A stretch of DNA of 64,000 bases from the NCBI GenBank assembly GCA_965637545.1, contig OZ281499.1:4588001-4652000 (forward strand), in the 5' to 3' direction. This stretch comes from Phallusia mammillata. Taxonomy: Eukaryota. This document shows, piece after piece, positions 248 to 24,900 of this stretch (its first letter is position 1; every line of letters begins with the position of its first letter). A model generated the notes under the pieces. It made no database searches and was not told where the DNA came from. It worked only from the letters and a program-made list of their open reading frames with translations. The position numbers and the translations under genes are program-made.

Positions 248-3200
248 GCTGACATTCGTGTTAGTTTGGAAGATCCAACTTATGGCAACATGCCTTACAC
301 CGTTCAATATGGACAATGTGGATCTCCTGGTGAAAACATTCATCTCACAGCTGATTATATAACTGACCCACAGTATACTGACATGTATGGGCCGAAAGGT
401 AATAAATTGAAAAGTGGTGTCAAAGGCTTTCAAATTTACTTGAATAATTGTTGGCAAATTTTAATCATTTGTGGCATCTGTTTTTTGACCAACATCTGCC
501 TTTTTTGTCAGTCCAGTTTAAACGAATCCATTTATCTTTGTTAAGATGTATTTGGGCTAAAGATGCTTTGTTTGCATATTTTAAGGATAGATTTGTCACA
601 ATAACAATAGAAACCTAATAATTGAAACTACTAACATACCCACATTTTTTGAATCCCAATCACTTTCTTTGAACGTCAGACAAAAATATGGTGTAAATAT
701 GTTTTTAGAAGCACATATATTTATTTTTACTGACGCAAGACAGTTTGTTTGCAGACAAAACGCTCATCCACGAGTGGGCGCATTTGAGGTGGGGAATTTT
801 CGATGAGACTCCAACAAGTGGTTACGAAGATTTTTACTACGACGTTAATGGCGTGATACAATACACCAGGTCAGCAATAATATAAGTTAGGTAAAATAAT
901 AAGTTAACATTTTTGTACAACACTTAGGAGTCCATCTACAGTCCTGGGAGAAAACTACGTGGTCGATTTCGAAAGTGGAGAAGTTTCAACTTGTCAGTAT
1001 AAACAAGAAACTAACTGGCTTCCACTGGATGGCTGCATTTTCATTCCATTCGAGAACCAGAAAGATGGAGTTCATTCCTCCATTATGTCCTTTCAATACC
1101 ACAACGATGTAATACCCAATAAACGTTGCTAAAATCCAAAACCTATGATAAAATATAAATCATAAAAGAATACAACGAATTCAATAGTAATACTACAAAT
1201 GGTTTATAGATAAATACAAAATACATGCAAATCAAGGGCTCAAACGTGGTTTTTAGATTTTCACATTTGACCACGACGACGAGTCAGACCCGCAGAACTT
1301 ACACGACAAGGATGCTCCCAATGAACACAACTTGCTCTGCAACCAGCGAAGCGAGTGGGATGTGATTTCATCATCTGAAGATTTCGCTGGTGACATCAAC
1401 CCTGCAAATGATGCCGTTTTGGACGTCACCCCCCATTTTCAAATAGTGCAACAACCCGACTTTCGGATTGTCCTTGCGTTTGATATTTCCAGTAGTATGA
1501 ACGACCAGGTGAATACTTTTCACTTGCTTTCACATTTTTTTGTAATCGACTACAGATTGCTAAAAAATCAAATAAGAGATGAATACTTAATTTCCAAACT
1601 TTTATGGTTGTATAACCTGTGCTGTAATAAAAATTAAAGAATTTGTGGGACCTAACCTTTCTTCTAACCAAATGGGTATCAACCTCAAAGGATACATTTG
1701 ACATCAAGGGATACATTTGACATGCTTTGTGGGTTTATATAGTTATGAACAAACTTGATCAAAAATAAAATTAGGCTGTTAAACACACTTTAGGGGAATT
1801 GTTAATGTGTTTGATAACTTTGGAGGCACATGAAATGGCCATGCTTTAGTTACTTAAGCTGATAAACCTTTTGATTGGCAACGTTTAACAGAAGATCCAT
1901 TCGACTATACACCACAATATATTCGAATTGGCCGAGATATGATTTACGGTGTCTCTATATTTTCAGCAACAATACTTCAATATGAAAAATGCAGCTAGTA
2001 CCTTCGTAAGGGAATTCGTACCTGACGATTCAATCATTGGTCTGGTTCAGTTCGAAATCGAAGGGAGCACGTTAAGTGAAATGACTTGGATTGACAGCGA
2101 CCAAGACCGAGCAGATTTGGTGGCAAATTTTCCGACAGGAACAAAGAGCAAAACTTGTATTGGTTGCGGGTTGCTGCAGGCCCTGGAGGTTGGAATTTTT
2201 TTTATTATTATTGGTTTAATGAAAATCAAATTGTTGTGAAATCATAAAATCATTTATAAAGGTGTTTCTTTCTTTCTCCTTTTTATTGGGAAATATGCTG
2301 CAAAACGCCATATATATTTGTTTTTGACTTCTTGCATTATTCACTTGACAGATTTTGGCTCCAACCAACAAATCAACAAAATAGAATCTTATTTCCCAAG
2401 GCCAAGCATTATTTCAAGGCTGAATTTTTTTTTTGAGTAGGTTCTGAATAATTTTGACGACCCAGCGGGAGGACAGATTATTATTTTAACGGATGGCAGT
2501 GAAAATACAGCTCCTTTTGTGAAGGATGTCAGTGAAGATATTCGAAATGCGGTTTGTACAAGCACATCCACTAAATCGCAGCGCATATTTCAATCAAAAC
2601 TGTTTTTTTATAAGAATGTCATGGTGAATGCTTTGATGTATGGTGAAGCTGCAAATTCCGACCTGGAACAGTTGGTGCAATACACAGGAGGAGCGATGTA
2701 CTTTGTAAATGCGTCAGATCCTTCTTCAATTCTTTCAGCATTCAAACCATTAGCCGAAACTAACGACGGAAATTTAAACACAAAACTATTTCAAGTATGT
2801 CCAGGGTATTTTGCATAGTTTTTTTTTTATTTTTTTATCAAGTCATGAGCGATTACTTAAATGTTTCCATTACTGGCATTTGGAACAAATTTACTCCATA
2901 ATGATTTTTGAGTGGATCTGCCTAAAATATAGTTGCGAGAAAAGAGTAATGTAAATTGCCCTAGCCATAATAAGGCCTATGTCTTGTCACCAGCTGCACT
3001 AATGAAATATTACAGATCGAAACAGTGTTCACTGTCTGCAGCGTACCTATAAATTTAATTTTTTCAGCAAATTTCGAAACATAAATAAAAAAGACCTTTT
3101 GGGATCTGATTTTACGCTAATAACGTTAGAACAAAAAAAATCACACTCACATAAAGTTATCAAATTTTTGATAATGTCCCATTTCTTTTTAGTTGTTTAG

Positions 3201-6200
3201 CGAAAAATACACGATACCTTCGCATGGGGCGAAGAAAGGTGAAGTCGTGATTGATTCAACCATTGGCGAATCGACGACCTTCTCTTTTGTGTGGTCTGAT
3301 TACTGGATTGCTCCAACTATAACCATCACTGATCCAGTCGGAAACTCGTTTGGAAACAATGATGCTGTTATTGATGTCGACCACAAAACTGTCTTCTTTA
3401 AAATACCAGGCACTGCTATGGTAGGTTGCCAGCAAAAGTTTCAAAACGTGCAACTTGGCAAGTTTGGTTGTGTTTTTATTTTTGCGCAAAGTTGACTTTT
3501 CAATCTTTTAGAGCGGAATATGGAAGTTTACGATTGCAACAGGAACTCATTTCGAAAATGTTGCGGTTGTTGCAACTTCAAAAGCAAGTAGCGGTGATCT
3601 TTTGCCGATCAATGTTAGATCGACCATGACACTGGTTGACGACACAAACGAGAGTCCAACAATCTTTTACTCCAAGGTAAAAATTGCACCCCAACAAAGC
3701 AATCAATTTACCCACTTGGGGCAACATCTTTTGTAGGTGTCAAGAGGTTATGAAGCGATATTGGGAGCAAAAGTTCAGGCGACAATCAACCACCCTGATG
3801 GGACTGTCAGCAACGTGGATTTGTTTGACAACGGTGCAGGTATTTGAATATTAGCATAAATATGTATTTAGTTCTGTGTGCAAGAATCTTTTATGAAAAT
3901 CTGCCACCAATAGCTGGACAGTATATCGGTAGTATATTTTCAGCTCCCGACATACGTGCAAACGATGGTGTCTACAGTCGATATTTCAGTGAATACACTG
4001 CATCTGGAAAGTTTAGCGTACAGGTGATCTATCTTGAAATATTTTGTTTTCCTCAATTTGACAGTTGAAAACCTGATGGTGTTTACAGGTCAAGACTTTG
4101 GGTTTGGGCAAAAATTCGGAAACTCTTTCTGTGAAAACAAAACGTCGTGGATCATCTGCAGCTGTTAACTATGGATATGTAAAGGACGATGGTAAATTAC
4201 TTTCTTTGGGCCCAACAAGCTGCATCTTTGGTTTTTATGCACAAAAGGCCTGCCATTAATCATACTTGATTGGTTTCACTTACGCACTTTTGATTGTAAA
4301 GTTGCTTTTACGATTTTACAGGCAGTGTTGTGTTGAACACAAACCTTCCACAAGAAATTCCACCTCTCACAACAAAAGATATTGAACCATTCCAGAGAGT
4401 TACCACGCTAGGAAGCTTCCACCACGACCAGTAAAACTTTTTTAAAAATATTGGCCAAAAGTTTTGTACCCTTTATACAACTAGTCAGGGTTTGTTGAAC
4501 ACAAATCAATTTGGCAATTCAGGTCAGTAAGCAACTTTTACAACGACGTGGTCCCTCCGAATCGAATCATTGACTTGAAAGCTACACAAGTGGACATGTT
4601 ACATGTAGATCAGGGGATTCAGATCACCTTTACAGCTCCTGGGGACGACAACGCCGTTGGCACAGGTGTGTGATGCAAAGCAACAATCATTAACCAGTTG
4701 CTAGTGATGTAATTTTCTTGTAGAACTTGTTTTAAGCTTGTTTTTTTTGTAATTTTATGATTTTTTGCCCATTAAAGCTACGCAATACGAAATCCGTTAC
4801 ACTTACGGGACGACCAGCAAACTTCTGACTTCATTTGATGACGGTGAACTTGTGACTGACGTCATGGTAACCCAGGGCGATATAGAAGATCCGATGAGGG
4901 CTTACCAGTTCGAGTCACTAGTTATCAAGTTGCCTGATATACCTGCAGTGGAAATGGTCACGTATGTAAACCTTGTATTCTGTCAACGTCTTATGTATAT
5001 CAGTATGCGTTCGTTTAGTAAGTAAACAGCGTAAAACGCCAACAAATATAAGTTCACCTATGATAACATCACTCCAAGCCGGGAGTTAAGTAAACTGTTT
5101 TTAAATCTGAAAAGTTAAGTAAACTGTTTTGCGCTATAGATGAACGTTGTTACAAGCTTGCATGCCATATCTTTAGTTTTATACACTATCTCATCAATAC
5201 TGCTTTTTCCAACTTTACTATTTTCTGTACAATGTTTTTATTCAGCTTGTGTCCATAATGTAAACCAGGGGTTCCCAACCTTTTTGCGCTCTCGTACCAC
5301 TGCCACGCGTACCACTTCTTGCAGAACAACTAATTTGATCGAATCATATTTTATTCAGAAGAATAATATTGGCCTGCTAAAATAACACTAAAGCACCACA
5401 ACGAAATTTAATGAGAGTTTTGTTTACTGTTCACCGATTGGTCGATGCGCGGTGTAAACTTGCAGCGCATCGAAAGTCATTTCCGGGCGCACCTAGTCGG
5501 TTACAAATTTTTGACTTGATGATCATCGTGACGGAAAATATCTGCTCACATTCCTATGCATTACTACGAAGCATATGCTACCTCTTCATACGTAACCGTT
5601 ATTGAACATTTTATCCTGATCTATTTTTAGTTTACAACACTAGCATCATTCAACGCTATTTGTAGCTTTCTATATAAAATAGTAGATGATATCTATCAAG
5701 AGCAATCATTTGAAATAATTAATGCCCACTGTCCCACAGCATTCTACAGCTTTTCAAAGTTATATTTTGAAGATCGTAATGATACGAAACAACAGGAATA
5801 GTTACGTAACAATAAGAAGAAGCTTGGAGAATTTTTTTTGTGAACAAAACCAGATAAACAAAATATAAAGTTGTAAATTCAGGTTTTTGTGAAAAAAACG
5901 GAAGCTACTCGCGTACCACCTGAAAAGCCTTCGCGTACCACTAGTGGTACGCGTACCACAGGTTGGGAACCCCGGATGTAAACAGACTCTTGTTTATTTT
6001 CAGAGTTGGAATCGCAATGCGAGCTATCGACGATGCCGGGAACGCGGCTGATGTCTCAAACGTTGCTGTTCTCAATCTCTTCTTGTCTCCTCCAGCAATC
6101 TCATGCACTGATGATGCAGGAAATCCTGCAAGTTCGTATCCATTCGAAAAGAACGGGGATTGTTTGAGATATTTCCAGGTATCGTGTACTTAACATGATA

Positions 6201-6568
6201 AACCAGTTCTACTTAAAGTGCTATGCCTTGCCTAATAGGCAAACAATAAAATCACAGCAAGTTTTCGTACAATATGACTGACCAAAATGTTTTTACCAAG
6301 TAACTCTATGTCTTAAAGAGGAAGACCAAAATAAAAGGGCAAACACGTGACAGGATTGATGGTCACATTTGCAGAGCTCTTCTGGCAATTGTATTTTTGT
6401 ACCAAAGAGTTTTAATAGTCTTTTGTAAATATATTGCTATATGTTTTACAGTGTGCAAGTGGAGAGTTAAAGACAATGGACTGTGCATATGGTGCTGTGT
6501 TTGATCCTACGTACAATGTCTGTGTTCACCCGTCGTTGGTACCAGACTGTGCAGATGCTATCCGATAG
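248..6568 (+). CDS. CLCA: CLCA family secreted zinc metalloprotease (CLCA_N-vWA-beta-FnIII) with C-terminal chitin-binding type-2 domain, copy 1; multi-exon, 5' exons lie upstream of the window
   Basis: GT-AG exons join in frame: 248-398, 755-869 (HEWAHLRWGIFDE, HExxH at 769-783), 928-1108, 1257-1508 (MIDAS AFDISSSM), 1967-2188, 2441-2551 (ILTDG), 2615-2794, 3193-3420, 3512-3676, 3737-3839, 3944-4023 (DGVYSRYF), 4089-4191, 4322-4430, 4523-4665 (FTAPGDD), 4778-4961, 6004-6178, 6452-6568 (TAG). These motifs are CLCA hallmarks. Confidence 0.93.
5266..5975. mobile_element. hAT-type MITE in a CLCA copy-1 intron
   Basis: TIRs CAGGGGTTCCCAACC / GGTTGGGAACCCCGG; perfect 8-bp TSD ATGTAAAC (5258-5265, 5976-5983); internal CGTACC repeats; the paralogous intron of copy 2 (about 12270-12310) shows the empty site. 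Confidence 0.9.
6104..6568 (+). other. Chitin-binding type-2 (peritrophin-A/CBM14) domain, encoded by the last two coding exons of CLCA copy 1
   Basis: CTDDAGNPASSYPFEKNGDCLRYFQ|CASGELKTMDCAYGAVFDPTYNVCVHPSLVPDC: spacing C-x18-C-x5-C-x9-C-x12-C-x8-C with the typical YP, YF and FDP aromatics. Confidence 0.88.
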
Positions 6569-8021
6569 GTAAGTTTGTTGGTTTAACTTTACACAATGCC
6601 TATAAAATTCAGCACATATGGTTTGCATTGAGTTAATTGTACAAAACCTATATTGCAGCCGCATGTAGTAAAAATGCTGCAAAGTTATACAAAACCATGT
6701 TTTAGCGACAAATTTTTTTAGATTTATTATAATTATATAAAAAAAGATAATTATCAATTATGACGGCAAATGATTTCCTATCATAATTATTCATTGTTTG
6801 TTCTAGAGATTTCGTACAACGATGTTCAAAGCAGAAGACGAAAATGTTATGATTCTGCTATAAAATTACAAGAGTAATGGTGTTTTATAAATTGCAAACT
6901 AATAAAAAAGGTGAAAATATTAACTTTGTAATCCATTGAAAAGGAAGTGTAATAGTCTATTGTAAAAAGTCGCCCATTCGAAAAGCCCATTCGTAACATT
7001 AGAATTCGATTTCTTGGGAAAGTTTACAAACAGGATTGAAAAAAATTTCTGGTTTCAACAAATATTTCAATTCATTCCAATTGGTAGAATAAAAAATGTG
7101 TTTGTCAATCACATCCTTTTGCCACAAACAAAAACATCAGGATAAGACAAGCGCTAAATTTTAAAATTCTTTTGAAGCAACTTGAGATGTGGTAAACTGA
7201 CGCCCCATTTCTTATAAGAAGCGTATGAAAACAAATCACAACCTTCGTTAATTTAAATTGTAGTTTATGACAAACAACAAACTGATTAGGAGTTTGTTTA
7301 TACGAATTTGTGTAATTTTAAACAATACCCAAAGTAGTGTTTCTTCTAAACTCGACAGATTCATAACTTGTAGCATTAACCTTTAAACATGATACCGACA
7401 TAATAATTCATTTCGTTTGAGGCTCAGCTTTATTGCAGACCTTTATTAGATTTTTAGTTTAATAATCTTTCATACCTTTGTGTCGTTAAGTAACCATTTG
7501 ATGACATACCGTTCAAAACCGTCGATCGTGTCGTTATGTCCAAAGATTCTTTAGAATCCGAGAGAATCAAAGATCATACGGATTAGCTATGTAAAGTTAC
7601 GAAAATATGACATGCATATTAATCAATGTTGTAGTATCAGATTAACATTGGACACTGTAATATAAACGCAACGCAACTTAGTTTTCATCTTACTGTCCTC
7701 CTCAGCCTTGTCAAGAAGTTAAAAAAACACGTCTGGAAGTTAAGAATACGACTGCAAATTATGAAGTGTAGTGCAGTGCTAAAGTCAGACCGCAGCGTTT
7801 GCTATACATTTTCAAAACGCATGTATTTGCATTTCTCTGGCAAAAGTCACAGAAATATTATAAAATTCCAAAATTACTGTAAAACGAGTTTTATATCCTG
7901 GTTAGTTTGATACAGCATCGTCTTTCACAATTAAAAGGTATTGAAAAACAGCCAACCCGTTGACATAATCCAGTGCTGTAAAAGCTGATTGCAATTACTT
8001 TTGCTTGCTGCAACATCTCGA

Positions 8022-8344
8022 CTGGCATGTTTGCATTTTGCTTAAAATAATCGTGGGGCTGCTGAAAGTCAACAGTCATTGCGACTGTAAACGAATTGCA
8101 GAGCAAACAGCTGCAGAGCTGCATGAGTAATGCAATTTGCTGTCGTTATAACGAAAAGTATGGAACTGTCTTACGAACTTTATGTACAGTACTAAAGTTT
8201 TTAAACTTTGATGTATGGCAATGACAGCTAAAAGTAAAATTCTGGACAGACAAATGCGCTGTTGAAAAAAGTCAAGATCATTCTTAGATTAGGGTGTGCG
8301 CCCGTACGAGTACATGTACTGGCGACCATGCAACGCCAAAAACG
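8022..8344 (+). repeat. Dispersed repeat of about 320 bp; second copy at 43092-43417
   Basis: Colinear high similarity by eye (e.g. GCTGCTGAAAGTCAACAGTCATTGCGACTGTAAACGAA and GTACTAAAGTTTTTAAACTTTGATGTATGGCAATGACAGCTAAAAGTAAAA are shared); termini and TSD not identified. Confidence 0.8.
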
Positions 8345-11300
8345 AGTTTAGAATTCCTTCTCTTCACTTTCATCTTTCAAGTTATGTATTTTGAAATGTT
8401 CCAGGACACAAGCTAAATGCGTTTTGGGGTTCACACATAAATATTAAAGCAAATGCAGATCAACGTATTCGATTTAAACATCAGCGTAAGCATCGCTATT
8501 TCAATTTAATTACACGCTTTAGTACAACATCATACGTCTCATAATTGTCACGACGCCGCACTATACACATGGTTCCGCTTCCGCCTCTTTCCGCATCGTA
8601 ATTGTGGAAATGTACAGCATCAAGATATGAGTAAACATCGATAATTTATAACTGAAATACAGTAGGTTGAAAAAGTTTAGTATTGCAAATATGATAATAA
8701 TGCACGGTTAGGTTTCTACAAATAGCGTGATGTGATCGAAATTTGCAACGTAGTTTCCTTTTGAAAGTAAATTGGTGGGCAAAACATGCAAATGTTACAC
8801 CACATAAGACATAAACAGTTCGTTTTTACTATTCACTCTTAAACAACGGTAAATAGTCTTTCAGTCAAGTAGGTCACTACGATTGCTTTGTCTAAAGTTT
8901 GCAAATTCAAGCCAGCAACTAACAAACTTCACGTGGTCCAAACTAAACTCAATACTAAATGGCCAAAAGCACAGCAGAAAGAAGCTACAAGGGCATTGTT
9001 ACGTCATAGGAGATTCTGGCATTGTGGTGCAATCACACGACAAGACATGTGACGTTGGTATACGGTTGAGTGATTTACAATGTTGCCTAAAAGATAAACT
9101 CTTATTTCTCTACTCTTAGACATTTTAGGGCTTCTTACCTTCTGTTTTAGATGTTGAAATGGTGTTTGTTGGTGCTGTTATACGCACGAACGAATGGTAT
9201 ATTCCTTATTTTTTTAATCAAGCCCAAAGCTTATGTGATTCTTTCTGCCTGTAAAAACCACGCAAAATGACCGCATATGTAAGTTTCACATACTCGACTC
9301 CACAAACAGTGCACCTCGACAGCTCAAGGCACACGTGATCAAATGTTATCATCCTCATTTTTTTCACCAAACCCAAAGCCTCACTGAAAACATCTGTTTT
9401 GCCTGCAACACCTCGCATAATAACCACACATGTGATTTTTAAAAACTTGACTCAAAAACGTTATACCTGGACAGTAATCTGTCAAACTGGAGGCTTTACA
9501 ACAGTAAATGAACTCCCTGCAACGTTTTTCTGCAAACGATGACATCATTCACGTTAATTACCTCAACCCTGATAGTCCCTTCAGGCAGTTGTTGTGTGGC
9601 AAGGCTGGCCGATAAGGCCGATAATTTAACATCAGATAAGTGTACAGAGCGTTACGATTCGGTTAGACTTCAGGTAAGGTTTCATTTTATAGCTTCACCA
9701 TTAGGACACAAATATATCTATCATCCAATGGGTAGCATCGTAATTCTCAGTCTTGCATTGCGCTATGCGAAATTACAGCGTTCCGTCGTTTACGCATCAG
9801 TGTGACGTCACGCACACGAGACGCATTGCTGTGTGGCGACACCAAGCGACGCAAAACCAACTGAGGACTGCCTAACTGGAAGCCATTGGGTCGGAATAGA
9901 TCAGCTTGGATAATTTGCAGTCGAATTACAGGCGATTCTAAACAAATATTCACTGTGACTATGACAAATACAAGGTGAGGTTTTCTTCCGTTTGGGGTCA
10001 TCAAATCAAACAACCCACTTTTCGTTTTAAGAAAATTGATGCAAGGTATAACATAAACAGTTACTTATTACCAAACACGTTAAACGAACAGTTAATAGTT
10101 TGTGATATTGGCAACACTAGATAACATGTTTAATACCCCAATATCAGTTAGTTAATTACGTTACCATACTTGTACATAATACTGTTTATTTCTGTACATG
10201 ACAAGTTACCTTGTATTTCAGATGTAAGAATGGGTTTAATGCTGTCTTTAAGCACTTCTTTAATTTGCCTGTAAAGTCTACTAATGCCTCTAGCAATTGC
10301 AAATAATGCAACGAATTGATAACAAGCGCTGCTTAGATTTGTATGTTAACTCCATACCATACGTATTTGCTTTAAACTATTGGTTAAGCATTCTGCCTTC
10401 ACAGTGACTTGCTAAACTGTGCCACAACAACTCCAATCTCTTGCAACATTTCTTTGCCGAAAATGCAATCGTCCACGGTAATTGCCTTAGGCGCCGCGTC
10501 TCTGTGCCTGTAGATTTTCAGTTCCTTGGAGCAAGATGTCGGCAAGACTTCTCTCCCCACGGCGCTAAGTAGAAAAGCGTGGGTAGAGCATAATGATTCT
10601 TGAAAGGGCTTGGTTTTACAGCAATATCGGTGCTTATGCAACGAAAAATAAAAGTATCACTTTTTAATCACAGCATACCTGTCTTTTTTCTGTAATGCCA
10701 TTTATTAATTCTGTCGCAATAACAGACTGTGACTACCCAAAGATAACTTCTTGATAAATAATATTAATTAAGTTGTGCAACACAAGCAATGTCATACCCC
10801 AACTTTAGCTCTGCCGGCTCAATTGCCATGTTGATTCCCTATTTCTTGGAAATCATTATAGCAACTAACATACAAATTTAATCACCGTGCTTGCTGAGGT
10901 ACAAAGTATGACCGGTCTGGGTAAATACGCTTTGAAAACGATCGCCAATCGCGTCGAAAGGCACTTATATTTTATTGGATTTGTCTCCTGAAGGGCCTTT
11001 TTTGATTTTGACACATAAACTTGTTGAAAATGATTAATAAATTCAATTTATTTAAAGCCAAAGCATGTTTTTATTCTAATAAGTTACAAAAACTGTCAAA
11101 TTCGTCATTATTATTTAACGAATAGTTAACGTAGAATTTTCTCAATTTTGTTGCTAAGAAAACTCTACGCTGCCTTATTCACAAAATCACAAAGTACACA
11201 ATTTTCACCATAATTTATTATGTTGCAAGTCACAGGTTAAAAAGCTATCAATTAATACTTGAGATTTTCTTGCAGAATCGTAATAGTTTCGTCTTTGTTG

Positions 11301-11563
11301 ATGAATGTCGTTGGCTGGTGGCTCTAGAATAGAACAGCAGTTGTTTTATAGATAGCAAAAAACAATCACCTTCATATTTCTTACTACTGTCACATGTAAA
11401 ACTAATTAGTTTACTTCATTTGCAATGTTTATTGTTTAATTAACTTAAAGTGGAAGTTTGTGTAAGAAGTTTACGACTTTTACAGCATTGGACCGTTGTT
11501 GGTGATGTAAATATCACTTATAAGATATTTGTTTGCATATTGACAACCTTTCAAGCTTTCTTA

Positions 11564-11730
11564 CTAAATAGCATCTGCACAAGATGGCATCAATGATGGG
11601 TGAACACAGACATTGTACGTAGGATCAAACAGGAACTTGGCCAAATGGTCCGGCGCGCCTGACCCATATACAGACATAAAAAACCTGATCGGGATTCGTC
11701 CCCGGGAGAGACCTGGGTTCGAACCCCGTG

Positions 11731-11804
<74 letters not shown>

Positions 11805-14800
11805 AAACACAGCACCATATGCACATTCCATTGTCTTCAACTCTCCACTTGCACACTGAAAAACAAAGCAATACATTTTTAAAACAAAAAAGATTTGTAA
11901 TTTTTCGCTTTCCTCTTGTTTTTGAGCGGTTAATGAAAATACCCATGCTTTTTTGTAACTCAATGCAAAAAAAATGGAATGCAGTGGAAAAACTTTCGTC
12001 CGTTTTTCCACAAAAGAACTGTTTCACAGGTGACAAAAATTGCAATACATGATAGTTGTTGGTACATAATCTGCCGCATAACTGAGTACAATACCTGGAA
12101 ATATCTAAGGCAATCCCCGTCCTTTTGGAATGGATACGAACTGGCAGGATTTCCATCATCATCAGTGCATGAAATTGCTGGAGGTGACAAGAAGAGATTG
12201 AGAACAGCAACGTTTGAAACATCAGCCGCGTTTCCTGCATCGTCAATAGCTCGCATTGCGATTCCAACTCTGAAAATAAACAAGAGTCATTTTACATTAT
12301 GGACACAAGCTGCATCAATACATTGTACAAAACTAGTAGAGTTGGAAAAAACAGTAGTGGTGGAATCGTGTGAAAACCTTAAGATTTGGCATAAATGCTT
12401 TCAACAATGTTCATCTATAGCGCAAACCAATTTACTTTCCCCCAGTCCTGCTATAATCACAGTGTGCCAAACTTATTCCATGGTGAGCTCCCGCCACATA
12501 ACTCTTCATACCACGGTGTAGCTGCAGCGCACTTAGTTGTGATCCATCAATTGTGCCATTCACTATTTTGCGCTCCATAACGTTTCAACGTTGCTCAGCT
12601 ATTTCAGACTTTATTTCAGGTGATTATTCAGTGTAATTGTGACGGTATATATGCTTTTATCAGGCCTAATAAAATTAACTCAACTTTCAGGTGAATAACA
12701 TACTTCGTCCCGGCATAGACTGGTGTTGTCATTAGAAAACTATTATTTAATGCCGGTTATCACTGTGTCTCGAAATTGAACAAAACCAACACGTACTGAT
12801 ATGCAAAGAACATTGACGGAATACAATGTTTACATACGTGACCATTTCCACTGCTGGTATATCAGGCAACTTGATAATCAGGGACTCGAACAGATACGCC
12901 CTCATCGGATCATCTATATCGCCCTGCGTCACCATGACGTCAGTCACGAGTTCGCCGTCATCAAATGACGTCAGAAGTTTACTGGTTGACCCGTAAGTAT
13001 ATCGGATTTCATATTGTGCAGCTAATAAAATCAGGGTTATAAAACATTTTGAGAAGATTATAAGCTAGAGATCATCTTGAACTATTGATAATAATAATTA
13101 CTTTGCATCACATACCAGTGCCAACGGCATTGTCGTCCCCAGGAGCGGTAAAGGTAATTTCAATTCCTTGGTTTGCATCCAGCATATCCACTTGGATCGC
13201 TTTCAAATCAATAACTCGATTCGGAGGGACCAAGTCGTTATAAAAGTTGCTTATTGACCTAAATTTACAAGAAAGTTGTTTTTAAGTTACAAATTGTGTG
13301 ATCAAAAATTTTGCTCAATGAGAGAAAATAACTTCAAAATTGCATTACATATTTATGACTATTATTATTTTTTTACTCGTCATGGTGGAAGCTTCCGAGC
13401 GTGGTTACTCTCTGGAATGGTTCAATATCTTTTGTTGTGAGAGGTGGAATTTCTTGTGGAAGATTTGTGTTCAACACAACGCTACCTGGAATTAAATAAA
13501 CACCACATTGAAAAAGAAAATAAGGCCACAACATTAAAGTCGGACTAGAGCAGTCTTTTCCAACCACAAGATGCGTAGGGAAAAGGCAATTTAATTTTAA
13601 AGGGGCTCAATAGAATAATCTGGTTGATTGTTACCATAATGAAACCGCTCTTTGTCTAATTCATGTCTTTGGAGAATCAATTGCACCACAAAATTGACCT
13701 TTTACGTTTTACACAATTTGATTTGTCAGTGAGATATGGACCACCAAAGGTTGGAAAACACTACATCTTATTAATATCCTGCGAACGATAGAATTTTTTC
13801 TAACAAAACAGTCTACCGTCGTCTTTTACATATCCATAGTTGACTGCAGCAGTTGACCCTCTTCGTTTGGTCTTCACCGAAAGCGTTTCCGAATTTTCGC
13901 CCAAACCATAAGCTTTGATCTGAAACAGAGTCAGGTCCCAGAATGTTTAAAAAATAGCCGAAAACACTTGTAGATACTTTACCTGGACACCAAATTTCCC
14001 AGATGCAGTGTATTCGCTGAAATATCGACTGTAGACGCCATCGTTTGCACGTATGTCGGGAGCTGAAAATTAGATACTAGTAAAGTTTACTACCAAAAAC
14101 GTTCATTTTTTTGTTATTGAACCAAATAAGTTTTTCTTATTGCCAATAAAGGTAATCAATTCATTAATGCATGACATTGCGCTTTATATCGGCTGGTCAG
14201 GTCACCACAATGGTGTACAACCACAATGCCGTGTAACATTTCAACAAAAACTTGGCTTTTTAACTTCTAATTTTGAGTCTTTTTATTATTAGTTCTGAAT
14301 TTATATCATTTTTTCATTGTTTTTATTTGGCTTAAGCACGCATAATTTTAAAATATAAACTTTGCAAGGGTCTTTCTGTTTAAGAAATTACCTGCACCGT
14401 TGTCAAACAATTCTAGAGTGCTAACTGTCCCATCTGGATGGTTGATACTGGCTTCAACTTTGGCCCCCAATACTGCTTCGTATCCTCTTGACACCTTCAA
14501 AATTGTTAGAATGAAAAAAAAACAAGTAAAATTTGAGTTGTTTTGAATCATAAACTTAACCTTTGAGTACAGGATTATCGGACTCTCACTGGTGTCGTCA
14601 ACCAATGCCATTTTTGATTTAACATTGATCGGCAAAAGGTCACCACTACTTGCTCTCGAAGTTGCAACAACTGCCACGTTTTCGAAATGAGTTCCTGTTG
14701 CAATTGTAAACTTCCAGACTCCACTCTTAAATTGTAATCCAATTTTCATTAGGGTTGTGTCAAAGTTTTTGTAATGCCACCAGTATTCGGTTTCAACTAT

Positions 14801-17800
14801 AGTTTGTTGAATCCCAATATTGTTAGTCTACTAACCTACCATAGCAGTGCCTGGCATTCTAAAGACCACAGTTTTATGGTCAACATCAATAACAACGTCA
14901 TCGTTTCCGTATAAGTTTCCGACTGGATCAGTAATGGTTATAGTTGGAGCAATCCAGTAATCAGACCACACAAAGGAGAAGGTCGTCGATTCGCCAATGG
15001 TTGAATCAAGCACAAATTCACCGTCTTTTGTTCCGTATATTGGTATTGTGTATTTTTGGTTAAATATCTATAGCAGAAACGTGCGTAATGTTGTAAAGTT
15101 CTGTCCTGACTGTATTTTAACTTTTGACTGCAACAAAAATTCGTTTTCTTCTGTGTCACTTTCATTGGAGATCAGGAACTAGTTTTGTTAATCATATGTG
15201 TGTCGTTATTTTATTAGATTATTTACATATGCATGTTTTAGTTTTTCTATTTGTCCAATTTTTTATTCTGATCATGTCGCTATAGTACATGATGTTCAGT
15301 CATTTTGGAGTAAATACTTTGTATTGTGAACCAACTAACTTAAAGGAGCAAAACAAAATATATTGAAACCTGGTATATATCTGTGTTTAGGTTTCCATCA
15401 TTAGTTTCCGCCAAGGATTTGAAAGCCGAAATCATTGACGAGGGTTCCGAAGCGTTTACAAAGTACATCACCCCTTCTGTGTCTTTCACTAGTTGTTCCA
15501 AATCCGGGTTCGAAGCCTCTCCGTACATAATAGCGTTAACAACAACTCCCTGAAAAAAACAAAACTTGCAAATCTTTCCTAAAGACAAGTAAAGCAACTG
15601 CAGACCTTCGTTTTTATACCACTAGCCACATCTTTGACGAATGGAGCAGTATTTTCCAATCCATCAGTCATTATGATAACTTGTCCACCAGCCGGGGCCA
15701 TAAAGCTTTCAAGCATCTTTAAAAAACACAATAAATGAAGAGCACTCAGCGTATTTTTTGTTTGTAGCAGGGGTGCCCTTTGTCACTGTAAGACTAAATA
15801 CAATTACCATGATTTATTCGTGGGCCGCAACCTATGTATAATACTAGGTGATTTTGTTTTGTTGCATACCAAAGATGCCTATATTGAGGTAACAAGCAAA
15901 ATTCGCATTTGATTCTAACCGCATTATTGTCAGGTTGCAGTAAAATTGCCTTGGGCGTATGTTCAAAAATAGATGGTAATTTAATTCTTTTTCAGTACAT
16001 TAGAAAATCCAAGCGTCTCTGTGCCCCGCCCAATCGTTTGCCAATAGTCCGCATTTGGTCCCCGGGCAGCAGGTTGCACAAGCCTGGTTTATAGTACCTG
16101 GACGGCTTGTAGCAATCCACAACCGACGCACGACTTGCTTTTGGTCCCTGTTGGAAACTGTGCCACAATATCATCTCTCACTTGCTTGTTTTCCAACCAA
16201 ATCATGTTTTCAACCAAATTGCTTGCCTCAATTTCGAATTGAACCATTCCCACATAACTGCCAGTTGGAATGTATTGCGTGACGAAAATGCTTGCTGCAT
16301 TTTTCATGTTAGAAAATTGTTTCTGAAATAAATGCGCCGAGTTAGTGCAAGATTAGTACAGCGTCAAACCTGTCATCAAGTACCTTGTCGTTCATACTGC
16401 TTGAGATATCAAAAGCAAGACTTATCCGGTAGACAGCTTGTTGCACAAAGTTAAATTGTGGAGTCACGTCTAACGCCTCATCATTGTAAGGGTTGATGTC
16501 ACCAGCGAAATCCTCAGATGACAAAATCACATCCCACTCGCTTCGTTGGTTGCAGAGCAAGTTATGTTCATTAGGAGCATCTTTGTCGTGTAAGTTCTGC
16601 GGGTCTGACTCGTCGTCGTGATCAAATGTGAAAATCTGGACAAATGATTGGATGCATTTGGTTAAACCAATTTTGGAAATGCATAAAGAGCCGTTAAACG
16701 ACAGGACTACCAAAGAACCATTCAAGGGCTATCCAGCAAGATGACGTTGCTGGCTAAAATATACTCGTTTGGCAGGACAGTTGCTGATGCGCAAGCCCGG
16801 CAATGCTGTCATAGACGGTTATAATATTTCAATTACGCCTTACCTTAACAAACGTGTTTTTTAAGGCCAATAGTAGACACAACCAACAGCAAACTCTGTG
16901 TATAGCATATTATTAATTCACGAGTCACCAGAGACTCAGTACGAGAGATGGAGACAACAGTCGCATACAATAACAAACAGAAGCTTTTGGAATATTAAAA
17001 TTCTGTATTTGAAAATGATGATACCTATTACTTATTTTATAAACTTAAAAATGGTGGATGACTTCAAACTTGTCAAAGTTTTCAGTCTGCAACAAACAGG
17101 AAATGTTTTGTAAGTTCCACATTCATTATCCAGGATGAATGCTTACATCATTGTGATATTGAAATGACATAATTGAGGAATGCACTCCGTCTTTCTGGTT
17201 CTCGAATGGGATGAAAATGCAGCCATCCAGTGGAAGCCAGTTGGTTTCTTGTTTATACTGACAAGTTGAAACTTCTCCACTCTCGAAATCAACCACGTAG
17301 TTTTCACCCAGAACCGATGCAGGGCTCCTAAACATTGTTTAAAAATAATTAAGCTTACGATCTTTCTGCTGAAATCAATCCTTAAAAAAGCGGATTTTAG
17401 GTTATACCTTTTTTCAGGTGATCTCGAAACCCAGTGTGTAACATTGATCAGCCAAATACATTTGTACGGTAAAGATTGCAAACCCCGGGTAAAATTTCAA
17501 AGAAAGAAAAAATATATGTATATATTCATTGGTTTTAGCTTAGTTTATTTTAAACAGAAAAATGGGCACACTGTTTGCTTCGACTGTTTGGTCCATGTTA
17601 TATGTTGATTAAGTTGGTGTAAGTTACACACCTGGTGTACTGTATCACGCCATTAGCGTCGTAGTAAAAATCTTCGTAACCGCTTGTCGGAGTCTCATCG
17701 AAAATTCCCCACCTCAAGTGCGCCCACTCGTGGACGAGGGTTTTGTCTGCAATAAAAGCAATTTTATTTCAAAAAGAATACTTTTATTAAACTGTCGCGT

Positions 17801-19936
17801 TAAGTGACCACGTTTTCTGTTACATCAATTTCTTTGTTTTTTCTTCCAGCTGTATTTATAATCTGTGTATTGAAAAAAAATCGCTTTGGTTTTAAACAAA
17901 GAAACCTTGAATTTAGTTTTAACAACGAGCGTTAATTTCTTCTAGACTAGGGGTCGGCAACCTTTTTTCTACTGAGGACGTTTTTTGAAACTGAAATTTT
18001 ATCGCGGACCGGCTTTTAAATCATCCCCGGGGTATATGGGCAAAAAAATTTAGAGCATTTAACCTAAAAAAATATACGGCCCAGTAACGAACTCGTTGCG
18101 GACCGGTACCGGGCCGCGGTCTGGCGGTTGCCGACCACTGCTCAAGAAAGTTTGAGAAAAAAACGATAACTTGAATTTTTTTAACAATTTGAGTTTTTCA
18201 ATCAAGTTACTGGAGTTTTGATATTACTAAAATGATTTTTAACAACGCAATTATAAAGTTATATGACAAAGTTTATGTTTTACATTACCTTTCGGTCCAT
18301 ACATGTCAGTATACTGTGGATCAGTAATATAATCGGCTGTAAGATGAATGTTTTCACCGGGAGATCCACATTCCCCGTATTGAACGGTGTAAGGCATGTT
18401 GCCATAAGTTGGATCTTCCAAACTGACACGAATGTCCGCCTGTAAAGATAATAAAAACCAAATATCACCACAAGGTAGCGTGGCGATTAGCGCAACCACC
18501 ATGTGTCCAATAGGCTATGGGTTCTTGCAAAACATGGTCGGATGTTCTGACGCGCCTGACCCATGTACGGTTATAAAAAACTCGATCGGGATTTGTCCCC
18601 GGTAGCATCCTGGGTTCGAACTTTGTAAAAAAAAGGTTGTTGGTTCAAATTTAATCTCAGCCGCTTGTGAACCCGTTGAGTTTAACTAAATTAAACCTCC
18701 AATAAGCACCAACAAAACAGTAAAGGGTTTGAAGCCCCAGCACAAAATTAAAAATTCAAATAAAACTGCCTTTTTAAGTAATAAGAACAATAAATTTCAC
18801 AACAAGATTAAACGTCTTCTACAAATCAAAAATTTTGATGAGACCAAGTTATAAGCCACTTTGTTTATTTTTAGTTGGTTAAACGAAGGTGGTAAACCCC
18901 CTTGCCGCTAAATACATTTGTCTTGTAATACAATAACCGTAATGTGGGTGTTGGTAGACACTACCTTGCTTTTGGGTTTAACAGAAATATACCTTACTAC
19001 ATTTTTTTAACGTGGCGTTTGGTAAATTTCTAACATAAACAAGTCCAAAATAAAAATAACCAAAATGTAAATATTTTTAAACAGGGCAAACTTATGTTCA
19101 GGTAAAATATGACAACAAAAATTCGGGCTTAAATCTGTGCTATTCAAAACAGATCCGTAATTTGTTTTTACAACTTAAAAAACACTCTGGGTTGCCATTA
19201 AATGAATCAAAAATAGTATAAGCAATGTTAACAATCTGACATTGATTATATATTTACACAAAGATGATTAATTGGGGCTTAATCTAACCTTGTCATAGGT
19301 TTGCCTGATAGCAGCGTCGAAGTTGTTTGCACTCCAAGTCTTTGGTATAACGATGGTAACATTACCGAAGTAGGCTCGGTGGTTGGTGGCTTCCCATAAT
19401 GCAAACGATGAACTTGCCAGCAAATTCTGCAAATATTTTTTAGCAAACAACCTATTTCATTCAGTGTCGTTTTGTTTTACGCCGTTTAAACTGACAGAAT
19501 TGGATAGCTAGACACAAAGGAACATGAAATAAGCTATTGCTGCCAGGCATAATGTATGACCAAGTATTTCTCATCCAGCAGTTTTATTGTAAACAATCGA
19601 CGTTTCGACGTCCTATACAATTATGTCATTATCCTGATGAAGGCGTCTTGTATAGGACGTCGAAACGTCGATTGTTTACAAAAAAAACTGCTGGATGAGC
19701 AATTCTTGGTCATACAAAGGAACATGTTTCCTATAAACTTGATTTAAACATGAGGAATAGACTCAAAGCTCACTTACTTGTATTTGTTCTAGCAGCATAG
19801 GATCTTCTGGAACATTTGGGTTGATGGCGACCAAGATACCATCGTATCTGTTGTTAGTAAGCTTCACGTCGGAATACAGGCCCTCTGCACAAAGGCAGAA
19901 CAAGCAAAAGACCTTCAACACAGCTATAATGCGCAT
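11564..19936 (-). CDS. CLCA: CLCA family secreted metalloprotease, copy 2; complete from signal peptide to stop, last exon interrupted by a SINE
   Basis: ATG at 19936 (MRIIAVLKVFCLFCLCAEG, signal peptide), NNRYDGILVAINPNVPED, HEWAH at 17732-17718, AFDISSSM, vWA exon 16322-16098; exon structure parallels copy 1; last exon starts at 11855, original stop at 11564. Confidence 0.9.
11632..11799 (+). mobile_element. Young tRNA-derived SINE with 69-nt poly(A) tail, inserted antisense into the last coding exon of CLCA copy 2
   Basis: A-box TGGCCAAATGG, B-box GGTTCGAACCC, pure A run 11731-11799, TSD AGGATCAAACA at 11621-11631 and 11799-11809; copy 1 has the uninterrupted sequence. Confidence 0.92.
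17948..18140. mobile_element. hAT-type MITE (TIR AGGGGTCGGCAACC / GGTTGCCGACCACTG)
   Basis: Terminal inverted repeats visible, TSD degenerate; same family as 31111-31310. Confidence 0.7.
18533..18634 (+). mobile_element. Older, diverged copy of the SINE at 11632
   Basis: Shares GCGCCTGACCCAT..ATAAAAAAC..GATCGGGATT.GTCCCCGG..CCTGGGTTCGAAC followed by a short A run; intronic in CLCA copy 2. Confidence 0.8.
19555..19714. repeat. Palindromic element with a hammerhead-ribozyme-like core on the + strand
   Basis: Arms of about 65 bp (TATGACCAAG...CGACGTTTCGACGTCCTATACAA / TTGTATAGGACGTCGAAACGTCG...CTTGGTCATA); CTGATGA at 19634-19640 and GAAACGTC at 19662-19669. Confidence 0.75.
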
Positions 19937-19981
19937 GTTGAATTTGTTGGTTATCTAAGGTGGGTGGGTCGTGAACGCCGC

Positions 19982-19988
19982 TTATATA
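19982..19988 (-). promoter_or_regulatory. Probable TATA box of CLCA copy 2
   Basis: TATATAA on the minus strand about 46 nt upstream of the ATG at 19936. Confidence 0.55.
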
Positions 19989-21989
19989 CACCAGTGTGTG
20001 AAAGTTGCCAGCTGTTTGCTTCACGTGTCATCAAGCGGAACTGTCGTTTTACAAGTAAATTGGAAATAGTACATTAGAAAACAAAATTGCAAGTGGAAAT
20101 TGAGAAAGTGTGAAATATTATTTATAATACTTGGAACACATCCAAATACAAGTATTGGGGTAATAGCAACTAACCAGAATTGGTCAAAAATTGAGTACCT
20201 TAATCGTTGGTGATTGACAGGTAGAAGGTGTTTGTTAATTCCTGTGCTATGGTTAGATTGAAACGCAGTCAATTTTGTTGTGCAGTCAATATATCTCAAA
20301 CCAATGATGCCTTGACAATAAGATCTCAGAACTAACTATTTAAAATATAGCAGCAGTGTCAGACTTCCTAAAGTTTAGGACCTAAACGTTCAAATTACGA
20401 CCCTTGATTTATTTTCTCGTCACTTACCGAAAAAAGCAAAATAGATGATTTTTTTTACTAGTTTGTGGCCAATGAACATTTGGAGTTGGTTTTGGCTTAT
20501 TTGCAGATTTACTGAAGGTGCACATCACAGCTAAGTTTCGACTGACGTTTGTTGTGGAGATATGCTACTGCAGAGGTACATTTGTTGCATGTCATACCTG
20601 TGTACGTGACCGTTTCTGGTGTGCGTGACTGAACGATAGGCAGCTATTATTGTCATATTGAATTAACCTGTTGGATTTCAACAGTAGCCGACTTGGTGCG
20701 ACGCTGTTAATTGTACAAAGTGCCCGCCCTTTCATGACACCCCCTCTTTACGAGAACTGTTTGTTAAAATTTTATCATAAAAGTTTGCTCAAATTTCATA
20801 TGCGTTTGTTCTCACTTTGCGGCATTGTTTGGTGTAAGATCTTAACCCTAAGCTTGTTACGCCCCTTTAGTCATTGCATCTGATTGGTTGGGCGGGGTGG
20901 AAGGGGTCAGGTGGAGTGGGTGTTGTAAGGTGGGGTTTGGGCAATTGTCTAACACTGCTTTTTAAACTAGCAAAATTTAACTCATACGTATAAGGCGTTT
21001 TGGTAATGAAACTTTACACAATTCTAAGCACACAATACATATTATAAGCCAATAGTAAAAGGTTTATTAGACCTTGAAAATTTGCCTCCCGGAGTATAGT
21101 TTATCAAAAAACGACCCCAGTCTCTCTTCTTAAGAAAAAAGCAGAAAAAATATTTTATCTTTTATTGTTAATGAAAATGTTCGAATAGTTTCAAGCTAAT
21201 TTTAAAAGATTTATTTAAGCTAGTGCAATGCCACTAAACAGTTTTTGTGTTTAACCCGTTGCAGTACTTTTATACAAAGCAAGGTGTATATAAAAGGTGC
21301 ATTTGGTAACGGTAAAGCTGTGTACGTGACAGTTCCTGGTTCGCGTGACAAGGAAGTAAGTCTTGTAATATTTATTCGTGAGTTGCAACATCAGCAGAAA
21401 TTGGTATAACACATAGACGGTGACGAACGTTGAAACGACGCCCAATGAAAACGGTTCCTCGCAAACCAGTCATGAACCTATTTATCGGAACTGCTTAAGG
21501 TAATTTTACCGTCAACGTTTGCTCCCAGTACATGTGTATTTGCTTCCAGGTTTGCACCACCCCTTAATTTGGGGCACAACCTTATCTCCATTTTTCTTGC
21601 AGCTTATTGGTGGAATGGAATAGATGATGGGGGCGGGTATTGGGCTGCTCCTTCTAAAGTAACTGACCTTAAACCACATGTACAATTATTCTCATGAACG
21701 AGGTCGTTTGTTTGCTATGTTGCAACACCAGGTAATTTAATGCTGACAAAGTTTGGTGGTAGTACGTGACTTCTGTCACTATTTATATACCTATTTTTGA
21801 AATTAGCTGATTAACACAAGTTTTGATGCAGATGTTGTTTCCCAGAGACTAAGGTAGTTTAACTGCATATGTTGCTTCTCAGGGTGACGCACGTACGTTT
21901 CCTCTATATATTCCCAGACATCAGCATTCATTAATGCATTTAGCATTAGCAAAAGAAGTGAATGCGATAAAATACAAACAGTATTCACA

Positions 21990-24900
21990 ATGTATCGGGC
22001 AATCTTGTTTGCCGTCGTTTTCAACTGTTTAACTCAAATGGGAACGACTCAGGTGATTTTAGGTAAGTGTTTCTTACGTGGCTATAACCAAGTTATATAA
22101 AATTGGCAAACCTTTATTCACTTTGTTGCAGAAGGAAGAATTCAGTTCTCGACTTACTATTCAGGCTCATCATACAGAGTCAATTTTGGATCAACATTTC
22201 CGTCTCCACCAACCGTACATGCCTGGGCAAGAGGCTCTTGTCAAAACAAGTAAAAATATTTATATTGGTCGTTGTAAGAATACAAACAGCGTCAAAAGAA
22301 CGTTTTTTTACCTGACCTATTTTTGTTCAGTGTAGGTCCACACCTGAAACGAGATGTTGCGCAGTATTCTTTACTCCTGCGCACAATGTACAAATAAAAA
22401 ACATTGTCAGACATGGTTCTTTAAACACATTTAAACTGTTATACTCGCTGGTTAATTCCAGTAAAATGTATAATTGCTAAGTAGAAGTTTGTGTGTTTTT
22501 CCAAAGAGATTTCGAAATAATTTAACGATTATCATAAAAAAGTGATAAATAAAAAAGCGATATCAGCGATTGGTAAAAGCTTAGGAATTGGCACTTAACT
22601 CATAATACAAAAGATTGTTTTATCTCTTTACCCAGTTACGGAGTCAGCGTTTCGGGTGTTGATGAAAGCGGGTTCACGGCTTATTTGAGCTATTTTTCCG
22701 AAACCATTTATCTTTCCTGGTCGGCAGTTGAAGTTCCACAAGGTTTGCCAAAATTTGCTGCTGTTGTTTGCTTCTTTGTTGGGTTCCTTTTGAACAATTT
22801 ACTTAAACGGAATAATAAAGATCGTTCCAAAGAAAAAAAGTCAATATTTAAATAAGGCCGCGATATAATTAACTACTCTAGTTATAGAGGAGTATTTACT
22901 GTGAGTGTAATTACTCGTATTAAATATATCATAAATTAGACACGAAATCGTTTCGATTATAGACAAACTTACTTACCTGGGAGAAGACACGGTGTCGTAT
23001 ACGTTCAACATTCCGACACCCAACAACATTTCTGTTCCAACTATTACCGAACAAAGCTCCTTTGTTGACGTAATGGGAAGAGAAATTCATTTCTCCCGGC
23101 TCAATCAACTTCTCCACGAGAAAAGGTGAGTTTTGATAAATCTTATTGATAACTTATTGCATTTTGTTAACTTGTCATAAAATGCCGTATTATCTTTCAA
23201 TGATGTTGTATTAGGTTTATTGCATAAGATACCTTTTTTAACGATTTCCTTTCAAAACAAGAGTTCAAAAGATTTTTATTCCTCTTTATGTACTAAGTTA
23301 CATAAATAGACCAAACCACACAAACATCAATTAAAATTGAGACTTTTATCAACTTAAGAGGTCATATTCCTAGAGCTTAAGTGTCCATATACAAACCACA
23401 TGTAAAAATAAGTAAGTTCTTCCCCTCCTTTTGAAATTACTCCCTTTGGAGGAATTCCTTCCCGGTTGGGAACCAGTGCATTAAATGACTTTGCTTAAGT
23501 AAACATCGCGCTTTTATACATTAATATTTGCAGAATTGATCAAATTGCGGCCTCTGCTCAATCAACACTAACGAGAGAACTTTTAATCCGTGGCGACACA
23601 GTTTACGTGGATGACGCCCAGAAAATCCTGAAGGGCTGGAAAAAAGTGACTGTTCTCGCTAGACGTTTGATTTCGAATGGCGGGGTTGTAAACATAAAGG
23701 TAAACGCTTCTACTTTATAACTATTTATCGGAAAACCTTCTCGGTCAAATTTAAAGCCGTTTGTTTTATTTTTTACATATTGGTAATAAAAAGTAGCATT
23801 GCTCCTGTTTAAAAAAACGGTCAACATAAATGTGGTTTGGGAAAAGAAAATGTTCTATTTAAAATAGAAATATTTTAACTTCGTAATCTACTACTTAAAG
23901 AAAAGTTTCTGAGCAGAAAATAAAAAATATTTTTAAATTGTATTACTTCTGGGTTCAGACGCCATATCGGTGCCAGTCATTGTCAAGCTCAGGAACATCA
24001 TGTGGCAGTACTGGGTTCGCATCTATTAACAATATTGGTGCGAATGGCATGGAGGGCTTTCCAAGTCCTGATTTTCATGTCTACGTAGGTGAAATTGACG
24101 GAAACGTAGCCATGAGAAATGAGGTAAAACAACAACCCACAACTGCTCTATTTATTTAAGTTGATTTAGGATCAAACTTCGTTTTATAGCGATACAACTT
24201 TGGGTGCCTAAAAATTATTCAATTTAAAGTTGTCGTTTCTTACAAATAAAAAACAATGCACGTTCTCATTCATGGGAAAAAAGGAATCAATTTAAATGGG
24301 GTAAGAGAAAAATCTTCGATTGGATTTTTCTTGCTTTTCCAGGCCAATCAAGGAAGTGCATCACAAGGTGGCGGGCAAGGGGCAAAAGGAGCCAAAGGAG
24401 CTAAGGGACCATCAATGAATTGTGGTCAATCGTGTGACAGAGATTGTGGCGGTTGGATAACACCCGGAGACACTCATCACAATAAAGGTTGTTTAATTGG
24501 TTGTATTCTAAGATCTTAAAGCTAATTGCCGATGCTACTACATTTTTTTAAAGTTAAATTACATATTGTTCTTTAAAAGACGTGCAGCCTTTAAAATTTA
24601 AACCAAATTAAATAAAGACGTATAGCTAGGCAAATATGTTAATACTTTTCGTACTTTCTGATTTTTATCAGTCAATTTGTTATCCAACCAAAATCTTTTA
24701 GACTAGGTTAAAAAATATTAATCAAACCAACTCAAGATTTTTAGTAATTCGCCTATTTTGAAATTTGATATGTTACCTTAATCTTTTAGCCAGGGGCGGA
24801 TCATTGTTTTGCTTGATAACCCAAACATACGCCAGCGCTTTCTTTTTTTCAAAACGTTAATGAAAGACAAGCACTTCAACTACGGTCTGTTCTAGGCCAA

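Follow-up and report, generated by a model that had tools for sequence, protein, structure and literature searches.

How might a secreted protease of the CLCA family be held on a chitinous gut lining? This question is raised by a stretch of 64,000 nucleotides from the tunicate Phallusia mammillata (GenBank assembly GCA_965637545.1, contig OZ281499.1, positions 4,588,001 to 4,652,000 of the forward strand), hereafter called the window, which carries two CLCA genes. A reading of its letters alone (the sequence-only reading) had proposed that both genes, here copy 1 and copy 2, continue from a fibronectin type III-like (FnIII-like) domain into a chitin-binding module of the peritrophin-A type (CBM_14). 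In mammals, CLCA1 is a secreted goblet-cell protein that ranks among the major components of intestinal mucus other than mucins. It is reported to be a mucus metalloprotease that processes the mucin MUC2 (PMC6085540, PMC6851300). From the analysis presented here we consider it rather likely that the window holds two paralogues of a tunicate CLCA subfamily, in which the CBM_14 docks the secreted protease on gut chitin, where it would cleave matrix proteins.

The FnIII-like domain of copy 1 continues into a terminal CBM_14

The DNA of the window is eukaryotic and AT-rich, and its introns are short and of the GT-AG type. We placed 17 exons of copy 1, whose two 5' exons lie outside the window, with the Phallusia mammillata protein CAB3231498.1 as a guide; the two are colinear and every intron is GT-AG. 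As listed in Table 1, the last three exons splice into one frame that leads from an FnIII-like domain through a six-cysteine module to a stop codon. The penultimate exon lies between the acceptor ...ttttcag/AGT and the donor CAG/gtatcg, the terminal exon opens at the acceptor ...ttttacag/TGT, and the junctions 4961/6004 and 6178/6452 are the sole GT-AG pairs that give the protein length of CAB3231498.1. The module extends from a first cysteine codon at 6104-6106 to a last one at 6548-6550 with the peritrophin-A spacing C-x18-C-x5-C-x9-C-x12-C-x8-C, and it has aromatic residues between Cys2 and Cys3 (YF) and between Cys4 and Cys5 (Y, F and Y). When the 65-residue tail was compared with the Pfam CBM_14 profile (PF01607), it matched with E 1.1e-10 and 41.9 bits (cut-off 22.1) over profile positions 8-53 of 53. 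No hydrophobic segment follows the CBM_14 of copy 1, and neither copy has a hydrophobic or transmembrane helix at its C-terminus. For copy 1, the passage from FnIII through the six-cysteine module to a stop with no transmembrane segment, as the sequence-only reading had laid it out, proved exact in its coordinates and spacing and joined by GT-AG junctions, and the assignment of the module to CBM_14 was confirmed by the Pfam match.

The fold was examined on the homologous tail of CAB3231498.1 (residues 622-827), whose AlphaFold model had a predicted local distance difference test score (pLDDT) of 76 and found FnIII domains as its best PDB matches (E 5e-5, target template modelling score 0.6-0.7); the Pfam fn3 profile gave no match on the FnIII-like domain. 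Modelled alone, the CBM_14 reached a pLDDT of 84.7, and its PDB ranks 1-13 were all of the CBM14 type, comprising CHIT1 (chitotriosidase), Der p 23, tachycitin, Avr4 and Blo t 12 (entries 5hbf, 4zce, 6so0, 1dqc, 4z4a, 6bn0 and 2mfk among them). The E-values of these structural matches were just 0.02-0.8 because the domain is small, and a sequence search of the PDB returned CBM14-bearing chains at E of about 1e-3.

Other candidate identities were considered and rejected. Classical peritrophins, as in the insect peritrophic matrix, consist of CBM_14 repeats with or without mucin-like proline-, threonine- and serine-rich stretches and have no enzyme domain, and this identity was ruled out since here a single CBM_14 stands behind about 900 amino acids of CLCA, VWA and FnIII. 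A VCBP-like protein was ruled out by its other domain content, and a chimeric window gene model by the conservation of exon boundaries between the two copies and Ciona. Each window gene has one CBM_14; a relic second CBM_14 exon was looked for 3' of either gene and was not found.

Both copies retain the motifs of a CLCA-type metalloprotease

The Pfam profile of the CLCA metalloprotease region, PF08434, matched the exons of copy 1 at profile positions 78-126, 128-154 and 230-260, in profile order, and copy 2 at positions 1-30, the matches on window exons of both copies having E-values of 5e-9 to 3e-6 and all exceeding the 25.6-bit cut-off. The zincin pattern HExxHxxxGxxDE is kept in both copies as HEWAHLRWGIFDE, which differs from the mammalian CLCA4 motif HEWAHLRWGVFDE at one position (I for V). 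The metal ion-dependent adhesion site (MIDAS) pattern of the VWA domain, DxSxS, is likewise intact as DISSS in both. Pfam VWA matched CAB3231498.1, which is 84% identical to copy 1, with E 2e-12, and gave no match above threshold on individual window exons. The start of copy 2 is a Met at 19936 followed by a hydrophobic signal peptide. We take this to show that both copies encode secretory zincins of the CLCA type in which the active-site motif is intact; protease activity is predicted for both.

The copy 1 intron at 2552-2614 (63 nt) is in frame and stop-free; keeping it would add 21 residues within the VWA domain, and CAB3231498.1 is without them.

Copy 2 carried the same module until a SINE insertion

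Copy 2 lies tail to tail with copy 1, and its exon boundaries correspond one-to-one with those of copy 1, with AG/GT throughout. The two copies are 84.9% identical and have a ratio of non-synonymous to synonymous substitution rates (dN/dS) of 0.13 over the whole gene and of 0.20 over the CBM_14 (65 codons, with 10 synonymous and 9 non-synonymous differences). The whole gene and its terminal CBM_14 are under purifying selection.

The last exon of copy 2 is interrupted by a tRNA-like short interspersed nuclear element (SINE) that carries a tRNA-like B box and a long poly(A) of about 70 nt; the 9-bp target duplication on its two sides (11622-11630 and 11800-11808) is perfect. The exon is broken after Cys4, and the assembled frame runs into a hydrophobic poly-Phe stretch and stops at 11625 without Cys5 and Cys6; when the SINE is subtracted, all six cysteines are present and the frame ends at the stop at 11566-11564. 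The SINE is young, and in this assembly it has removed the last third of the copy 2 CBM_14. The claim that both copies end in the module therefore stands for copy 1 and for copy 2 before the insertion, and falls for copy 2 as assembled.

Two further observations concern mobile elements at the locus. A second, more diverged member of this SINE family seems to be present at 18432-18605 in an intron of copy 2, judged by a similar translated open reading frame only. The insert in the copy 1 intron between the FnIII and CBM_14 exons has terminal inverted repeats that begin CAGGGGTTCCCAACCT..., is missing from the matching copy 2 intron and is probably a miniature inverted-repeat transposable element (MITE).

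Table 1. Coordinates of the two CLCA genes and of the elements within them (positions count from the first letter of the window)
Feature	Position	Strand	Remark
CLCA copy 1, 3' part	248..6568	+	17 exons in window; open frame 872 aa
Copy 1, exons 1-6 of window	248-398, 755-869, 928-1108, 1257-1508, 1967-2188, 2441-2551	+	
Copy 1, exons 7-12 of window	2615-2794, 3193-3420, 3512-3676, 3737-3839, 3944-4023, 4089-4191	+	
Copy 1, exons 13-17 of window	4322-4430, 4523-4665, 4778-4961, 6004-6178, 6452-6568	+	
Zinc-metalloprotease motif, copy 1	769..807	+	HEWAHLRWGIFDE
VWA MIDAS motif, copy 1	1482..1496	+	DISSS
FnIII-like domain exon, copy 1	4778..4961	+	
MITE-like insert	5261..5980		~0.7 kb; copy 1 intron between FnIII exon and CBM_14 exon
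Penultimate exon, copy 1	6004..6178	+	Final FnIII strand and first CBM_14 half (Cys1-Cys2)
Terminal exon, copy 1	6452..6568	+	Second CBM_14 half (Cys3-Cys6); stop TAG 6566-6568
CLCA copy 2, complete	11564..19936	-	19 exons
Copy 2, exons 1-5	19936-19778, 19426-19289, 18439-18289, 17746-17632, 17327-17147	-	First exon: Met and signal peptide
Copy 2, exons 6-11	16635-16384, 16322-16098, 15716-15606, 15549-15370, 15067-14840, 14725-14561	-	
Copy 2, exons 12-16	14494-14392, 14062-13983, 13919-13817, 13485-13377, 13258-13116	-	
Copy 2, exons 17-19	13021-12838, 12269-12095, 11855 to original stop 11566-11564	-	
Zinc motif, copy 2	17732-17694	-	HEWAHLRWGIFDE
tRNA-like SINE	11631..11799	+	169 bp; antisense in copy 2 last exon

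CLCA-CBM_14 proteins form a tunicate subfamily

When 1.8 billion representatives were searched without a profile, with the copy 1 exon 1257-1508 as query, the matches were CLCA proteins, the best being CAB3231498.1. CBM_14 was carried by 4 of the 74 long representatives from this search, a count that is a lower bound (at least four among the matches listed). A local CBM hidden Markov model run on about 195 CLCA relatives found no CBM_14 beyond those four, and the ESM Atlas, in which clusters of at least 50 members are searchable, gave ordinary CLCA clusters only when queried with the Ciona CBM-bearing protein.

CAB3231498.1 (A0A6F9D9N0), on which Pfam finds CLCA, VWA and CBM_14, is 83-84% identical to both window copies and shares their domains and single terminal CBM_14. 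It is identical to neither of them and is probably a third paralogue. Its record is N-terminally truncated. The protein is named 'CLCA regulator 4-like' at NCBI and 'chitinase' in UniRef (UniRef100_A0A6F9D9N0). Pfam reports only the three domains above and no glycosyl-hydrolase domain on A0A6F9D9N0, and the 'chitinase' name is misleading, probably an automatic transfer from the CBM_14. In Ciona intestinalis, XP_078489083.1 has two CBM_14 (E 1e-29), and two head-to-tail CLCA genes with two CBM_14 each lie at 6,915,628-6,934,669 of AP043575.1 (8001-27042 of the stretch examined, whose numbering is used for the genes below). The first exons of the RefSeq models XP_078489082/3 match gene A (8001-17103) at 96-100% and their later exons match gene B (17968-27039) at 92-100%, so these models look like a chimera of the two tandem genes. 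Further CLCA-CBM_14 sequences were found on intron-less 3.6-kb contigs from two sequencing runs, with tunicates as nearest relatives, and on an intron-less 2.9-kb contig (coding 32-2881) of ERR338470, the transcriptome of the centipede Eupolybothrus cavernicolus (PMC8710254).

We built a tree with FastTree from the first ~900 residues, leaving the CBM_14 out. Tunicate CLCAs formed one clade (support 100), within which the five CBM-bearing rows again formed one clade (Shimodaira-Hasegawa-like support 97). The centipede CLCA-CBM_14 grouped with Daphnia- and arthropod-type CLCAs, so that the tree calls for two gains of CBM_14, the myriapod gain being apparently independent. Paralogues without CBM_14 from Styela, Clavelina and Branchiostoma end in a transmembrane or hydrophobic helix, and on the simplest reading the membrane anchor would have given way to a chitin anchor in the tunicate subfamily. 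From the tree and the shared exon structure of the first CBM_14, we assign the window genes to this tunicate CLCA-CBM_14 subfamily (Ci-CLCA1/2 type) as additional members.

The subfamily is already in the databases, was tabulated in 2018 and has barely been discussed. The sequence-only reading knew of no description of this architecture and named a domain-architecture search as a check; that search found CLCA-CBM_14 in Phallusia, Ciona, tunicate-like contigs and a centipede, and the supposed novelty has to be given up, as the Phallusia mammillata fusion is on record at UniProt and NCBI, the Ciona one is in RefSeq, and the 2018 supplement of PMC6109156 tabulates it. Chitin and tunicates go unmentioned both in the survey of the CLCA family by Lenart et al. 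2013 (PMC3650047) and in the 2025 CLCA1 cryo-electron microscopy (cryo-EM) preprint. Literature on CLCA together with chitin-binding, peritrophin, peritrophic or Ciona gave gene lists only, in which the fusion is undiscussed; a chiton shell-proteome paper was set aside, its VWA and chitin-binding proteins not being CLCA.

The proposed docking on gut chitin and its alternatives

Nakashima et al. 2018 (PMC6109156) give in their Supplementary Table 1 a proteome of the chitinous gut membrane of Ciona, obtained by liquid chromatography-tandem mass spectrometry, with a column headed 'Number of chitin-binding domain'. Among its entries are Ci-CLCA1 (KH.C9.782; 2 chitin-binding domains, 686 peptides) and Ci-CLCA2 (KH.C9.291; 2 chitin-binding domains, 183 peptides), along with VCBP-C and the chitin-binding gel-forming mucin Ci-GFM1; CLCA is never mentioned in the main text. 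The same work reports that the CBM14 domain of VCBP-C binds chitin beads. The idea of chitin tethering gains strong, though indirect, support from the orthology of the window genes to the CBM-bearing CLCAs of Ciona.

Each of the window proteins combines a signal peptide and the CLCA zinc metalloprotease with a MIDAS-bearing VWA domain, a beta-rich region, the FnIII-like domain and one CBM_14. The CBM_14 would dock the secreted enzyme onto the chitin nanofibres of the gut-lining membrane, and the docked protease could then process matrix proteins, for example a chitin-binding gel-forming mucin, as CLCA1 does MUC2. The sequence-only reading had proposed mucus-remodelling proteases held on a chitin mesh. 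Its tethering part gains support from the Ciona orthology, while the remodelling of mucus, the substrate and the actual binding of chitin are parts that we infer.

Several points weigh against docking on gut chitin. We know of no substrate of an invertebrate CLCA. Splicing of both copies in this species is predicted from sequence and homology, and homologue searches of a protein collection turned up no fragment from this species among the matches listed. That the two tandem CBM genes of Ciona are Ci-CLCA1 and Ci-CLCA2 is an assumption, and the tree comes from FastTree only and has the chimeric Ciona RefSeq model as a row. Moreover, chitin is not the sole ligand of CBM14, as hyaluronan and N-glycans are also recognised (PMC6109156, discussion).

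This breadth of ligands favours the view that the architecture is real and the CBM_14 targets another matrix, such as the pharyngeal or endostyle mucus net, the tunic or egg coats, or else hyaluronan or mucin N-glycans, and the same view draws on the single CBM_14 found here against two in Ciona and on the window genes being known from their sequence only. We nevertheless regard it as unlikely, given that the nearest structural matches are genuine chitin binders, that CLCAs with two chitin-binding domains are abundant in the Ciona gut chitin membrane (PMC6109156), and that the CBM-bearing subfamily is the only Ciona CLCA type with CBM_14 among the matches listed. It seems quite improbable that the tail is instead an oligomerisation or regulatory module standing in for the CLCA1-type hydrophobic C-terminal helix, which would make the product a soluble protease or, via its VWA domain, a regulator of TMEM16A-type channels: the MIDAS is intact and, according to the 2025 cryo-EM preprint, CLCA1 oligomerises through its extreme C-terminus, but the tail is a standard six-cysteine CBM_14 by sequence and fold, VCBP-C uses the same module to bind chitin, and Ciona CLCAs co-purify with the chitin membrane (PMC6109156).

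We give very little weight to the possibility that the terminal exons lie outside CLCA transcripts, as an artefact of the model, or that the genes are decaying pseudogenes. The disruption of copy 2 by the SINE would fit decay, and a locus model derived by homology leaves room for artefact; yet the 17 and 19 exons give uninterrupted frames and their GT-AG boundaries are conserved, dN/dS is 0.13-0.20, and the same fusion recurs in CAB3231498.1 of Phallusia mammillata, in two Ciona genes and, in three sequencing runs, on contigs that have the size of transcripts and no introns. Docking of a secreted CLCA protease on gut chitin is thus the explanation that we prefer.

The value of the window itself lies mainly in annotation, as it supplies two more members of the subfamily, one of them freshly broken by a SINE. 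The wider interest concerns the CLCA1-MUC2 partnership, whose origin is undiscussed in the CLCA literature that we searched. It is possible, albeit doubtful, that CLCA and a gel-forming mucin already worked together in the gut barrier of the last common ancestor of tunicates and vertebrates, both docked on chitin via CBM_14; vertebrate CLCA1-MUC2 would then be that pair after loss of the scaffold and the anchors, tunicate CLCA-CBM_14 a living intermediate, and the myriapod tethering an independent re-evolution. Chitin-anchored CLCAs alongside a chitin-binding mucin in tunicates would add a third shared component to the link that has been proposed between peritrophic-type and mucus-type gut barriers. 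Tunicate CLCA-CBM_14 also offers a tractable system, in which the CBM_14 can be deleted and the HExxH mutated.

Comparison with known systems

The Ciona genes are among the closest known counterparts. They share with the window genes the order CLCA-VWA-FnIII-CBM_14, the same zinc motif, the lack of a transmembrane helix and the tandem duplication of the gene; in both, moreover, the last FnIII strand is joined to the first part of the CBM_14 (Cys1-2) in one 175-nt exon, and the same phase-0 intron precedes Cys3 of the first CBM_14. They differ in having two CBM_14 per protein instead of one, in an identity of about 42%, and in lying head to tail where the window copies lie tail to tail. VCBP-C and Ci-GFM1 resemble the window proteins as secreted gut proteins with a C-terminal or internal CBM14 as chitin anchor, whereas their effector parts are unrelated, VCBP-C having Ig-V domains and Ci-GFM1 VWD assemblies, and neither has a protease.

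In the centipede protein, as in those of the window, a single CBM_14 comes directly after a full-length CLCA-VWA-FnIII, and there is no transmembrane helix. Its zinc motif, unlike theirs, is substituted, with RYWSH standing where they have HEWAH (RYWSHYRYGIFDE), and from this sequence it is probably non-catalytic. Mammalian CLCA1 has in common with the window proteins the CLCA metalloprotease, VWA, beta-rich and FnIII-like domains and a near-identical HEWAHLRWGVFDE motif; both are secreted without a transmembrane helix, and CLCA1 resides in the matrix of the gut barrier. Identity between the window subfamily and mammalian CLCA is about 31-32%, as measured on CLCA4 matches. In contrast to the window proteins with their terminal CBM_14, CLCA1 has no carbohydrate-binding module, and the short tail at its end drives oligomerisation.

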